In this document: positions 6,706 to 50,038 of the stretch, piece by piece
Layout: each line of letters starts with the position of its first letter
Position numbering within the stretch: position 1 is the first letter of the stretch
Assembly (NCBI RefSeq): GCF_006345805.1
Contig: NC_043004.1
Location: forward strand, 71,548,001-71,612,000
Reading direction: 5' to 3'
Length of the DNA: 64,000 bases
Source of the DNA: Octopus sinensis
Taxonomy: Eukaryota
Position numbers and translations under genes: made by a program
The notes under the pieces: generated by a model
What the model saw: only the letters and a program-made list of their open reading frames with translations
What the model was told of the DNA's origin: nothing
Databases searched by the model: none

Positions 6706-7029
6706 TCTTTCCTTCGAGTAAAATATACGATGAACAGCCGCAGCTTTCATCATGAAGATCTGTGCGGTAAAACGGGTGATACATGCTACATAAGCCATTG
6801 CAATAGCTAAAATATCCACAACGATCGCTTGATGTACACAGCAATGCACATTGGGTACGAGATGATGTCTCCTTAGATATTTCAAATGGGCCAGTTAAGC
6901 ATTTTGATTTAGAAAGTCTTTTGAAATTATTTTCTTTATATTCACCAGTAACCGGAGACAAGGAAAGTACAATTATCAAAGCAGGAAATAATTTCAGAAT
7001 GAAATGGTTTTCAACAGACGTTACCATCC
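6706..7029 (-). CDS. Gene A exon 2: signal peptide plus 8-Cys PAN/Apple-like domain (secreted protein)
   Basis: Acceptor tttttcag|GG ATG at 7029; phase-1 donor AAAGA|gtatgt at 6706; hydrophobic leader FILKLFPALIIVLSLSPVTG; motif TQCALLCTSSDRCGYFSYCNGLC; 35/73 identities by hand alignment to the 48-kb exon. Confidence 0.85.
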
Positions 7030-8019
7030 CTGAAAAATATATATAAATGTAGATAGATTTATAAAAAGAGACATACACATAGAGTCACCCTTACACACAC
7101 ACACACACACACACACTTATATATATATATTGTGTTATAATCACGAATGAAGGAATAACACCCACCATCATCACCACCACCACATTACACAACATGACGA
7201 CTAAATACAAAATAGGAGAAAAAGAAATAGATACAAATAGTATAATACATAAACCCATGTACACAAACAAAAAAGGCACACGTACACATACTTAAGATGA
7301 AAGGGGAAAACTATACAAAACCACTGATACAAGCAATATAGTAAGCAAACCCATACACACATACACACACACACAAAATACATACAAAATACATAAACAC
7401 GCGCGCACACTCTCACGCATGCACAGATAGAGACGCAAACGTATGATAGATGAGGATACACACCATAGAAAAACAAAATGGATTACATAGAACAGGGGGA
7501 GATGCCTGGGACGGAGGTCAGAGGTACATGATGAATGATTCCCAGACATAAAATAAGAACAATGATAAACAATAATAAACAAGTGGTGAACAAATTCATA
7601 ATGAGTGTGTTTATTTGACAAGAATAAAATGAACATCTCGAAATATCACAATGTCTGTTTCAAAACACGATTCCATATCAGGGACCTTGAAAAGAAAAAA
7701 CATAAGCGTAACATACACACACACAATTATATATATATATATATATATATATATATATATATATATACACATATATATATATATATACATATATATATAC
7801 ATATATATATACATATATATATATATATATATATATATATACATATATATATATGTATATGTATATATATATATATATATATATATATATATATATATAT
7901 ATGCGTATATATGTATATATATGTATACACACATATATATATATATATATATGTAGGTCCCGGGTTGAGTCGGGGTTAACCACAGTATATATATATATAT
8001 ATATATATATATATATATA

Positions 8020-9375
8020 TATATGATAATATAAGTCCAAATCTTACAGGAAAAATTCAATTTAGCAATTCTAAATCAAATTTCACGATATATAATATAT
8101 ATAAAATGTAGTGACAAACATCTATTAAACAATTCCATAAGAGAATACTAATCTTATTTATTCAAAATTTAAATCTAGAAAGGAATACCCGTATAATAGG
8201 GCTATACATGTTTTAGAGGATAACATTTGGAATGTGGTGAAAAATATTAAATTTCCTAAATATCCAAATAGACATAATGGATAATAGGAGAAAAAGAAAT
8301 AGATACAAATAGTGTAATACATTTAGCTATTAGAATAAAAGAAATCCGAAATATGGAAGGAATTATAGTACAATTAGATAAAATTTGGAACCTGTATAAA
8401 CTAGATGTTTAATTATATGATAACTTATTAGAGAAAGAAAAAAAATGTTCCAGAAAATGCTCCTTATATAATCAAGATGAAATATAAGTTAGATAATAAA
8501 ACTGAACCTTATGTACCTATGCACCCTAGAATTACTTTAAAAGACCATAAGGATAATTTTTATTCTGACCCAAAAATGAGACTTATTTGTCCATGTAAAT
8601 CAGATCTAGTAAAATAAGCAAGATCATTTTGATAAATATATTAATAGATTAAATGAAATTAATTACCTTAAACTTTGTACAAGTACTGATGATACTTTAA
8701 AATGGTTTAATAATACTAAAGATAAAACTAGATATAAATTAATTCAAATAGATATAGATAATTATTATTCTTCTGTTAATGAGATTGTACTCAATAAGGC
8801 CCTAATTTATGCAATGAATAAGGTTGGAATGACTTATGATGAAGTTAATGTTATTAAAATGGCTAGGAAATCGTTAATTACATATAATAATAAATTATGG
8901 GGTAGGAAGGCTACTAGAGATTATTTTGATATACCTATGGGGGTCACCCGATTCTGCAGAGGCAAATGATTTAGTAGGTATTTATTTATTATAGGAACTT
9001 CAATTAGAAAAATTAAAGTTGGATGGTGGTTTATATAGGGATGGCCTTTTATTAACAACTAAGGATTGCAGCAATAGAACACTAGAAATATATAAGAAGA
9101 AAGTATATGTTTTTTTATTAAATATATGGATTAGGTATTACTATATATAATGAGAACTATATTTTAATTATTTAGATACTAATTTTAATTTAATAACAGG
9201 TAAAACCCAAACATTCCACAAAATTAAGGAAAACCTTAGATATATTAATGCTAATATTAATCAACCTCCCTCAATTAAGAAATCGTTGATAGATAATATA
9301 GGTAAAACAATATCGATGCTCTCTTCTAATTTAGAGATTTTCCAAAAACACGCACCTTATTATAATGAAGCCTTG
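8020..9375 (+). mobile_element. Decayed Penelope-like element, RT region
   Basis: PRITLKDHKDNFYSDPKMRLICP, DIDNYYSSV, FDIPMG.PDSAE..DLVG, GGLYRD.GL, NQPPSIKKSL; several frameshifts and stops. Confidence 0.8.
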
Positions 9376-9387
9376 TGGGGAGATATC

Positions 9388-9820
9388 TCTTTTCCCTTTA
9401 GTCTTTTATCGTTTTAGTCATTTGACTGCGGCCATGCTGGAGCACCGCCTTTAATCGAGCAACTCGACCCCGGGACTTATTCTTTTGTAAGCCCAGTACT
9501 TATTCTATCGGTCTCTTTTGCCGAACCGCTAAGTGACGGGGACATAAACACACCAGCATCGGTTGTCAAGCAATGCTAGGGGGACAAACACAGACACACA
9601 AACACACACACGCATATATATATATATATATATATATATATATATATATATATATATATATATATACGACGGACTTCTTTCAGTTTCCGTCTACCAAATC
9701 CACTCACAAGGCTTTGGTCGGCCCGAGGCTATAGTAGAAGACACTTGCCAAGGTGCCACGCAGTGGGACTGAACCCGGAACCATGTGATTGGTAAACAAG
9801 CTACTTACCACACAGCCACT
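9388..9820 (-). mobile_element. Composite tRNA-derived SINE with internal (TA)n
   Basis: Head agtggctgtgtggtaagtagc...ggttccgggttcagtccc; tail ggtgctccagcatggccgcagtcaaatgact; paralogues at 25120, 49205 and 57004. Confidence 0.9.
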
Positions 9821-48196: not shown

Positions 48197-48526
48197 TGTT
48201 TCCCGAGAACCTTACATAAGATAAACAGTCGCAGGAAGTATCGTGAATATCTTCGTTGTAGAACAATTCATACATTTTGCATGGCCCATTACAATAACTG
48301 AAGTAACCACACTCCTCATTCATCATACACCGTAATGCACATTCTGTGACGGATGTCGTATATTCGGTTCGTGTAGTATGAAGCCTCAAGCATTTTGACT
48401 CCGTTGTTTTCCTAAAAAGTTGCCCGTCATCGTTTGATGCACCAGTTCTCAAAATCGCGATAAAAATAATTGTGAATACTTGCAGTCGACTGAGAATCAA
48501 ATGGGATTGATTTGACATTTTCATTA
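48197..48526 (-). CDS. Gene C exon 2: signal peptide plus 8-Cys PAN/Apple-like domain
   Basis: Acceptor tttttcag|TA ATG; phase-1 donor AAACA|gtgagt; leader LQVFTIIFIAILRTGA; TECALRCMMNEECGYFSYCNGPC; same Cys spacing as gene A. Confidence 0.85.
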
Positions 48527-49204
48527 CTGAAAAATATAGATACAGTAAGCACATAAATGTGAAACAAGGTGGAAAAAAGAGTACTCGAATACCAGAGGTA
48601 GAGTTATACGCTTTATTTAAAAGCAGAAGAAATAGGAAGAAAGTATAACAAAAGCTGTTACTCAGACTTTTACGTTCCCGTTCGTTGGACAGTGTTTGTT
48701 AAAATAGAATAGAAATAACAGTTTGATCAAAACTAGTTAAAGGATACACCTTTAAAAATGTATTTCTTTTATTGGTCCTTTCAAATAAAGGTCTTAAGTA
48801 TGCGATAAACAAAATAAATGAATTCAATATAAATTATAAATTATAAAAATCGAGGAACAACCTTAAATCAAACAGCGATTCAAAATACATATTGACATCA
48901 ATTATATAGAAATATAATTCGATTAATACAATTAATACATAAAAATTTAAAATTTAAACGGCCATGAATCAGATAAACTTAGGAAGGACCTTATTGCTTT
49001 CTTCCAAAGGATGGGCTTACGGGTTACGATAGATACTAACCTGAAAAGTGTAGATGTTCTAGATGTAAATTTGGATTTAAGGTCGGATAAATTTAAACCT
49101 TTAAATATGAAAGGGAAAATCGAACAGAGACTAGATAGAGGTATTTATTTCGAGAGACTAACTAATTTTCTCATTTATTGCATTATTTTTGTTTATTTAT
49201 TATT

Positions 49205-49700
49205 TCTTTTAATCGTTTCAATCCTTTGACTGTGGCGATGCTGGAGCACCGCCTTTAGTTGAACAAATCGATCACAGGACTTATTCTTTTTAAACCTAGT
49301 ACTTATTCTATCGGCCTCTTTTGCCGAACTGCTATGTTACGGGGGCGTAAACAAACCAAAATCGGTTGCCAAGCGATGGTGGAGGGACAAACACAGACAA
49401 AACATACAGACATATATACATGTATATATATACAAATACATACATACATGTATATATATATATATATATATATATATATATATATATATATATATATATA
49501 TATATATATATATATATATATATGTATGTATGTATGTATGTATACATACGACCGGCTTCCTTCAGTTTCAGACAACCAAATCCACTCACAAGGCTTTGGT
49601 CGGGCCGTGGCTATAGCAGAAGTCACTTGCCGAAGTTCCACGCAGTGGGACTGAAGACAGAACCATGTGATTTGGAAGCAAGCTTCATACCACACAACCA
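49205..49700 (-). mobile_element. Composite tRNA-derived SINE with internal (TA)n, in gene C intron 1
   Basis: Same family as 9388-9820. Confidence 0.9.
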
Positions 49701-50025
49701 CTGATATTTAAAAATGGTAATGATTTCTGTCGTAGACACAAACCACACGAGAGACAAATGAAAGATAAACACCAACATTGTGGGATTCGAAATAAGAACG
49801 TAAAGATACGTTATTTAATATTAAAATTACTTTATCTGTCGATCCATTATTTCTAAAATTCCCTAATTCTCTCATTGCTTCTCCTTGGAAATGCGAAAGG
49901 ATAATGATAAATATAATGTAACGAGAGAATAAATAAGCGGCAGTATTTTCCAACACAGAATTATAGAAACAATTGCAGTTATTATTGTATTATTATTTGA
50001 TTCCTAGTATTATTAATTCACTTAC

Positions 50026-50038
50026 CTTTAAAATTCAT
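50026..50038 (-). CDS. Gene C exon 1 coding part (ATG AAT TTT AAA G = MNFK, phase 1)
   Basis: Consensus donor AAAG|gtaagt; joins in frame to 48526 (G|TA ATG). Confidence 0.75.

Follow-up and report, generated by a model that had tools for sequence, protein, structure and literature searches.

Two exons on the minus strand of a stretch of the Octopus sinensis genome (contig NC_043004.1 of assembly GCF_006345805.1, positions 71,548,001 to 71,612,000; 64,000 nucleotides, hereafter the window) each encode a hydrophobic leader followed by a domain with eight cysteines. An earlier note on this DNA had read them as a tandem family of secreted PAN/Apple-like proteins, possibly of about 130 residues with no domain beyond that one. 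The question raised by the locus is whether the two exons represent such small proteins or parts of larger ones. We consider it probable that they belong to two neighbouring genes on the same strand, here called gene A and gene B, of an uncharacterised family of secreted recognition proteins, to date seen only in Octopus, in which an eight-cysteine PAN/Apple domain is followed by a second domain.

The PAN/Apple-like exons

The window is AT-rich, repeat-laden eukaryotic DNA. Within it, both exons had been placed exactly by the earlier note, and both are open:

48526..48197, minus strand: gene B exon 1, 330 nt, phase 1-1, hydrophobic leader and 8-Cys PAN/Apple-like domain
7029..6706, minus strand: gene A exon 1, 324 nt, phase 1-1, leader and 8-Cys PAN/Apple-like domain

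Each exon is preceded by a ...tttttcag acceptor, has an ATG 2 nt in from its 5' end, and breaks off after the first base of a codon, with GTATGT following exon A and GTGAGT following exon B. The phase-1 boundaries that had been proposed hold at the 5' and 3' ends of both. The cysteine spacing C-x16-C-x3-C-x5-C-x5-C-x3-C-x15-C-x-C is present in both exons, and 35 of the 73 residues in the domain stretch are identical, as previously counted; all eight cysteines fell into register in none of 100,000 shuffles. Compared over the whole exon, A and B share 39% of residues (BLASTP, E 6e-27) and 57% of nucleotides. No PAN copy beyond these two was found in the window by tblastn with both exons at E values up to 100.

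Gene B continues into a second domain

A word-indexed search returned two Octopus relatives, one of which (P0002) runs past the end of exon 1 with GTSWQKVFEINEKSFKRSPIYKYWESLPIEK. This continuation is encoded in the window at gene B exon 2. Exons 3-5 were located with family relatives (tblastn) and two hidden Markov models (HMMs), and the start exon was traced from the family N-terminus MNLKG. Together with exon 1, the coding parts of gene B are as follows:

50038..50026, minus strand: start exon, coding part, ATG AAT TTT AAA G = ATGAATTTTAAAG, donor gtaagt, exact pattern match
45291..45200, minus strand: exon 2, 92 nt, phase 1 to 0, (S)TSWQKVFEINESSFKRSPIYKYWENLPIQM, opens the second domain
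41682..41528, or 3' end at 41532, minus strand: exon 3, VKVTLRKNKTDVRSLIFDGRQTTFTSWFQYEKLISSQWFGDIK..., tblastn/HMM E 1e-12 and 2.6e-11
39991..39882, minus strand: exon 4, 110 nt, phase 2 to 1, QEDIAIRPDDSTKHGALGAKKVQNSKYKIGYREDVS, top HMM match of the C-terminal profile
38180..38125, minus strand: exon 5, last coding exon, DKYVKILLDALDIYTLLK then TAG, HMM alignment to the family C-terminus

Exon 2, the best-conserved exon of the family, shares 90% of its residues with the tail of P0002 (tblastn E 2.6e-17; HMM E 8e-15). It is bounded by cag/GT and ATG/gtaata (slashes mark the exon ends), and lies 2.9 kb downstream of exon 1 with a matching phase-1 acceptor. The phases of exon 4 are correct; it has ttttcag as its acceptor and gtaata as its donor, and it is collinear with P0026, a relative of 250 residues from O. 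bimaculoides (LOC106876622). Exon 5 aligns with the family C-terminus ...LDALDVYVLLE/K and has a tttcag acceptor in phase 1. All introns of gene B are GT-AG, and the joined coding sequence comprises 741 nt or 246 codons, giving 251 residues once the start exon is included. Gene B and P0026 are collinear from end to end with 71% identity and a single gap of one residue; over exon 1 alone, identity rises to 83%. Judged by its sequence, gene B (50038..38125) is complete in the window, with six exons and a predicted protein of about 250 residues.

The proposal of a PAN-only protein of about 130 residues is therefore wrong for gene B, which has four further coding exons and a second domain of about 135 residues, and whose full-length relatives measure 240-250 residues. 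It is probably wrong for gene A as well. In its strongest form, the PAN-only proposal would hold that both genes make secreted mini-proteins of about 115-130 residues, that translation stops at a TAA just past the exon, and that the GT 'donors' are coincidental. An in-frame TAA does lie 8-10 nt past the exon at the same place in both copies (...EGKSM and ...SGNSE, then stop), and several database models stop there or close by, among them P0001 (118 residues), P0011 (116 residues), P0036 and P0037. However, a phase-matched exon 2 lies downstream, with 90% identity to the continuation of both P0002 and P0043, and 11 full-length relatives of 234-286 residues continue likewise. The short models also coexist with full-length models of the same clusters: P0001 ends in ...NSE, which equals the read-through of the window into intron 1, and lacks exons 2-5, while P0002 (145 residues) has been superseded by P0043 (250 residues). 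These short database models look like truncations, and we regard PAN-only proteins as most improbable, although retained-intron transcripts could yield a PAN-only minor isoform.

Start exons and the extent of gene A

Each start exon contributes 13 nt of coding sequence, coding in gene B for MNFK and in gene A for MNLK, plus the first base of the following codon. The gene B start exon explains the end coordinate of 50038 that the earlier note had given. The MNLKG N-terminus is conserved in the family, with a mean identity of 0.87-0.91. The second start exon and the conserved blocks surrounding both are located as follows:

21871..21859, minus strand: gene A start exon, coding part, ATG AAT CTT AAA G = ATGAATCTTAAAG, donor gtaaga, exact pattern match
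49904..50164, minus strand: block around the gene B start exon, putative promoter/5' untranslated region (UTR) and beginning of intron 0
21741..21997, minus strand: block around the gene A start exon, putative promoter/5' UTR

The two blocks are 76.7% identical over 262 bp (E 6e-49), compared with just 57% for the PAN exons. The homologous intron flanks that had been reported for the PAN exons were clear here but weak beside those exons themselves: the nearest 40 nt matched at 67% on the upstream side and at 55% on the downstream side, where identity was down to about 45% by 100 nt, and background was reached within about 40-100 nt. This pattern suggests that the 5' module of the two genes, which may be regulatory, is under strong constraint or has been homogenised by gene conversion while the coding exons diverged. 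No start-exon modules other than these two were found in the window. A third candidate at 19928-19942, with one mismatch, was rejected as it has neither a GT donor nor homology in its flanks.

Joining the start exon at 21871..21859 to the exon at 7029..6706 gives MNLKGMVTSVENHF..., which matches MNLKGMATSVENHF of P0043 (LOC106876620), and exon 1 of gene A is 68% identical to that protein. The start exon accordingly appears to belong to gene A, which would imply an intron of 14.8 kb. Neither tblastn with 25 family proteins nor the two HMMs found exons 2-5 of gene A in the 6.7 kb to the left of position 6706. Because no homologue of these exons is present there, gene A (21871..6706 in the window) most likely runs beyond the window edge after its PAN exon. 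An exon-2-like match at 22004-21945 (E 0.6-1.3) lies inside the conserved promoter block and was judged to be due to chance.

Two tandem, near-identical open reading frames (ORFs) of 251 and 259 residues lie on the minus strand at 3185-3940 and 5161-5940, with a CCHC zinc knuckle (Pfam zf-CCHC, E 5e-5). From their sequence they are a gag-like transposon fragment, duplicated within what would be intron 1 of gene A.

Identity of the PAN/Apple domain

The assignment of the first domain to the PAN/Apple group is supported by the ranking of Pfam models, by comparison of a family profile with the PDB, by alignment, and by the fold of a relative's model. PAN models (PF00024 PAN_1 and PF14295 PAN_4, with curated cut-offs of 21.4 and 27 bits) were the top Pfam match in seven of nine family proteins, and P0021 passes PAN_1 with 25.0 bits, whereas the two window exons stay below both cut-offs. 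Searched against the PDB, the family profile matched 1hky, the PAN domain of Eimeria MIC5, with an E value of 7e-4, the apple domains of factor XI at about 0.01, and also TgMIC4. In both exons the core C-x3-C-x5-C is followed by an F-x-Y aromatic strand and later by C-x-(L/M) (CALLCTSSDRCGYFSYCNGLCSM in A, CALRCMMNEECGYFSYCNGPCKM in B), and it aligns residue for residue with CQELCEKDAKCRFFTLASGKCSL of 1hky and with the factor XI apple domains. Cys2, Cys3, Cys4 and Cys6 occupy the canonical C-x3-C-x5-C...C positions, and Cys1 falls on the first apple cysteine (factor XI A1).

The fold was assessed by AlphaFold on the closest relative, P0026, rather than on a window protein. The model had a predicted local distance difference test (pLDDT) score of 83.9 and a predicted template modelling (pTM) score of 0.75. 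Its PAN region consists of strands at 42-60, a helix at 64-73 and strands at 77-110, with pLDDT values of 84-95, and shows the PAN arrangement of one alpha-helix packed on an antiparallel beta-sheet. Foldseek matched it with a probability of about 1.0 to 2ll3 (template modelling (TM) score 0.76, root-mean-square deviation (rmsd) 2.3 A), 1hky (rmsd 3.1 A) and 4dur (rmsd 2.6 A), and also to 4iua and 7mob (rmsd 3.0 A for 7mob).

The best matches in both sequence and fold are the PAN/apple modules of apicomplexan microneme proteins (E. tenella MIC5, 1hky; Toxoplasma MIC4, 2ll3 and 4a5v; Sarcocystis SML-2, 2yil), with which the octopus domain shares the core C-x3-C-x5-C-x-F-x-Y...C at a sequence identity of 11-22%. 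These modules bind galactose-type glycans or host proteins. They differ in that they usually occur as repeats in adhesins, have four to six cysteines instead of eight, and have no equivalent of the second domain. The Apple domains of factor XI and plasma prekallikrein and the N (PAN) domains of plasminogen and HGF have the same fold (4dur, 7mob), but are joined to protease or kringle domains and have six cysteines.

With Cys1, Cys2, Cys3, Cys4 and Cys6 all on canonical positions, the two extra disulfides proposed previously were an overstatement. Compared with the six-cysteine vertebrate Apple domain, we infer a single additional disulfide, between Cys5, which directly follows F-S-Y, and one cysteine of the terminal C-x-C. 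The alignment of Cys1 with factor XI A1, together with the C-terminal C-x-C pair, suggests an apple-type clasp between the N- and C-terminal ends. The predicted bonds would be Cys2-Cys6, Cys3-Cys4, Cys1 to either Cys7 or Cys8, and Cys5 to whichever of those two is left.

The second domain

The second domain, encoded by exons 2-5, spans about 135 residues and contains no cysteine. N-glycosylation sequons (FNGTGTNSTSWF) occur in this region in most paralogues. Modelled alone from the relative P0020, it gave a pLDDT of 92.6 and a pTM of 0.86, with 11 strands and one helix, and it is confidently predicted to be a beta-rich, unannotated domain. No Pfam match to this domain was obtained with nine full proteins or, at E values up to 10, with 15 isolated domains, no PDB sequence matched the domain profile at E 10, and Foldseek returned no match above a TM score of 0.46 in the PDB and none that was convincing in BFVD.

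The sole class that recurred among the weak Foldseek matches was that of fibrinogen-related proteins (ficolins, Angptl3 and FGL1), with probabilities up to 0.90 and TM scores of 0.42-0.46. Fibrinogen-related domains are secreted recognition modules that have expanded in molluscs. Membership of this class was rejected: none of 15 sequences matched PF00147 at E values up to 10, and the best TM score of 0.46 came with an rmsd of 7.1 A. Fibrinogen-related domains are also longer (about 220 versus about 135 residues), the octopus domain is without cysteine, and rmsd values range from 7 to 10 A. The likeness may be treated as a lead and not as membership.

Two relatives from O. sinensis, P0020 (LOC118762874) and P0039 (LOC118761499), have MNLK joined directly to the second domain, as would result from splicing of the start exon to exon 2. 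The symmetric phase (1-1) of exon 1 means that skipping it keeps the frame and drops both the leader and the PAN domain; these proteins may be either real isoforms or annotation artefacts. In a further O. sinensis protein, P0003 (LOC118764386, 402 residues), a single PAN domain precedes two copies of the second domain. Unless the model has fused neighbouring genes, this would make the second domain a module in its own right.

A tandem family, to date known only from Octopus

A HMMER search returned 25 relatives, most of them 234-250 residues long, and a profile search returned 27. Every one of these comes from O. bimaculoides, O. sinensis or O. vulgaris and bears the name 'uncharacterized protein' or, in UniProt, 'Apple domain-containing protein'. 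Outside Octopus, the sole matches were PAN-containing bacterial or metagenomic proteins. The restriction of the family to octopus is provisional, as the coverage of other cephalopods in the searched databases may be incomplete.

That the family is locally duplicated is evident from the two genes in the window and from six consecutive loci, LOC106876620-625, on one 97.8-Mb scaffold of O. bimaculoides; further runs of consecutive loci exist. A maximum-likelihood tree built from the PAN exon placed A as sister to LOC106876620 (support 97/95) and B as sister to LOC106876622 (86/82). These placements make A and B old paralogues, and the window seems to be the counterpart of the LOC106876620-625 cluster. 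The relatives in that cluster and those from O. sinensis and O. vulgaris share with A and B the MNLKG start, the leader, the spacing of the eight cysteines and the tandem arrangement. The second domain is shared with gene B, which is collinear with the family over its full length, gene A having been compared over exon 1. The same six-exon layout can be deduced for the relatives from their collinear proteins. The window genes differ from the cluster in sequence, at 68-83% identity, and gene B also in a frame shift in exon 3 that is described below. The window yielded no counterpart of LOC106876621, a locus that O. bimaculoides and O. sinensis have in common.

The pattern of divergence was assessed as mean pairwise identity among 11 full-length paralogues:

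Start exon: 0.87
Leader: 0.37
PAN domain: 0.40
Exon 2: 0.55
Exon 3: 0.38
Exon 4: 0.21
Exon 5: 0.24

Within the PAN domain, identity was 0.31 in the segment from Cys1 to Cys2 and 0.36 in the loop from Cys6 to Cys7, compared with 0.60 in the core. The earlier view that divergence is fastest in the N-terminal strand therefore holds within the PAN domain, but not for the whole protein, in which exons 4-5 have diverged further than the PAN domain.

Weighing the two-domain reading

Several observations weigh against our reading of A and B as genes for secreted, two-domain recognition proteins. The window exons themselves score below the Pfam gathering cut-offs, at 20.2 and 17.1 bits on PAN_4 and 15.5 and 12.3 bits on PAN_1. 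Exons 4 and 5 of gene B were placed by weak HMM scores (E 0.1 and 0.7) combined with splice-phase logic. The case for ligand binding is drawn entirely from the PAN fold. The literature was silent on the family and its accessions when searched by locus, UniProt and RefSeq identifiers, with one octopod genome paper included. The link across 14.8 kb between the start exon and the PAN exon of gene A is one that we infer. Two further points, a frame shift in exon 3 of gene B and the length of the hydrophobic stretch in the leader, each bear on a separate alternative.

Relative to all relatives, exon 3 of gene B has a one-base frame shift at about 41562-41552. The sequence was left unmended, and the two frame pieces were compared separately. 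In a three-frame translation, the open frame reads QPTSSTMR after ...SSQWFGDIK, whereas the neighbouring frame reads KATYEFNYA, matching VNYEFKYA of P0026 and GNYEFNYN of P0043 and holding a nearly invariant F. The open frame is thus without the nearly invariant Y-x-F strand. The strong donor GC/gtatgt, with the exon end at 41532, joins exon 4 correctly in the shifted frame only (...NYAQEDIAIRP versus ...KYAEEIIAIGP); the open frame of 246 codons is kept solely by way of a weak donor, AT/gtatta, with the exon end at 41528. The shift may be an error of the assembly or a genuine change, which would either turn gene B into a pseudogene or be rescued by the alternative donor.

Because exon 3 is shifted relative to all relatives, this copy of gene B may be non-functional. 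By extension, gene B could be a decaying pseudogene and gene A perhaps a fragment, both being remnants of a family that functions in other parts of the genome. Besides the frame switch relative to P0026 and P0043 and the dependence on gtatta, this alternative is favoured by the missing LOC106876621 ortholog and by a first intron of gene A that would be not only long but full of transposon fragments. On the other hand, every other exon of gene B has an open frame, good splice sites and 60-100% identity to the ortholog. Conservation is also high in the start-exon and promoter blocks, and both exons of gene A are intact; a difference of a single base may also be an assembly error. We think decay unlikely on balance, though it deserves more weight than the PAN-only or the membrane-anchored alternative.

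The leader bears on the question of secretion. A hydrophobic N-terminal leader is present in both exons, as had been noted. Its Kyte-Doolittle mean reaches 2.7 over 12 residues, after which comes a conserved (T/A)G-x motif. From the small-residue motif at its end (TG-A/E), it is probably a cleaved signal peptide. The hydrophobic stretch, with a mean of 1.9-2.05 over 19 residues, also fits a type II anchor, in which case an uncleaved signal anchor would display the PAN and second domains at the cell surface. An n-region as long as 13-18 residues including MNLKG would be consistent with such membrane-anchored proteins, as would the AlphaFold model of P0026, in which residues 11-33 form one helix of 23 residues. 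However, the hydrophobic core is broken by K or R (FILKLFP..., LILSRLQ...), leaving about 12 uninterrupted apolar residues, and the conserved motif at its end is typical of signal-peptidase sites. Membrane anchoring seems improbable to us, and secretion remains the preferred reading.

Proposed function and significance

If the two-domain proteins are secreted, the signal peptide would be cleaved to release a mature protein of about 25 kDa, N-glycosylated in many paralogues. The PAN/Apple domain would then act as a disulfide-locked unit binding glycans or proteins, as in microneme adhesins and factor XI, and the second domain may offer a further surface for binding or assembly. Tandem duplication followed by rapid divergence, with peaks in the Cys1-Cys2 segment of the PAN domain and in the half of the second domain encoded by exons 4-5, could give rise to paralogues of differing specificity.

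A bolder proposal is that the second domain is a new, cephalopod-born fold which, together with a four-disulfide PAN domain, forms a rapidly diversifying, tandem, octopod-specific family of secreted recognition proteins. We offer this tentatively and consider it doubtful as it stands. If true, possible roles would include innate immunity, the chemistry of mucus or egg coats, and chemotactile sensing. The Cys1-Cys2 segment and the exon 4-5 half would then form paralogue-specific surfaces, and the start exon and promoter would be kept uniform by constraint or gene conversion.

PAN/Apple modules are common, and public annotation already lists the family under uncharacterised proteins, but the architecture of an eight-cysteine PAN domain with an orphan beta-rich domain is undescribed. 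Lineage-restricted secreted families are candidates for a part in octopus-specific biology of the skin, suckers, mucus, eggs, immunity or saliva, a subject that genome papers raise but seldom settle. The present analysis corrects the gene model from a PAN-only to a six-exon, two-domain protein and provides a domain model that can be used for tests of ligand binding.

Repeats and transposon remnants

Between the end of gene B and the PAN exon of gene A, the region 27261-30963 contains a reverse-transcriptase ORF on the minus strand at 29159-30073 (RVT_1, E 8.5e-28) and, at 27930-28718, a sister copy. At 17525-17896 (minus strand) and 18050-18691 (plus strand), two ORFs in inverted orientation have the motif PKCRFCNGEIETIDHLISGWRVLAPAEYKARHDRVGQYLHW in common. 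By sequence, these three segments are retrotransposon remnants.

Dispersed repeats of 200-500 bp, 70-88% identical, occur in the introns of gene B and elsewhere: 49205-49702 is repeated at 9402-9820 and 57594-57804, 47349-47590 at 52867-53108, and 43823-44216 at 16623-17040. They are probably similar to short interspersed nuclear elements (SINE-like). Microsatellites of the types (TA)n and (TATG/CA)n are very abundant, for example at 7700-8040, 26184-26564 and 55028-55250.

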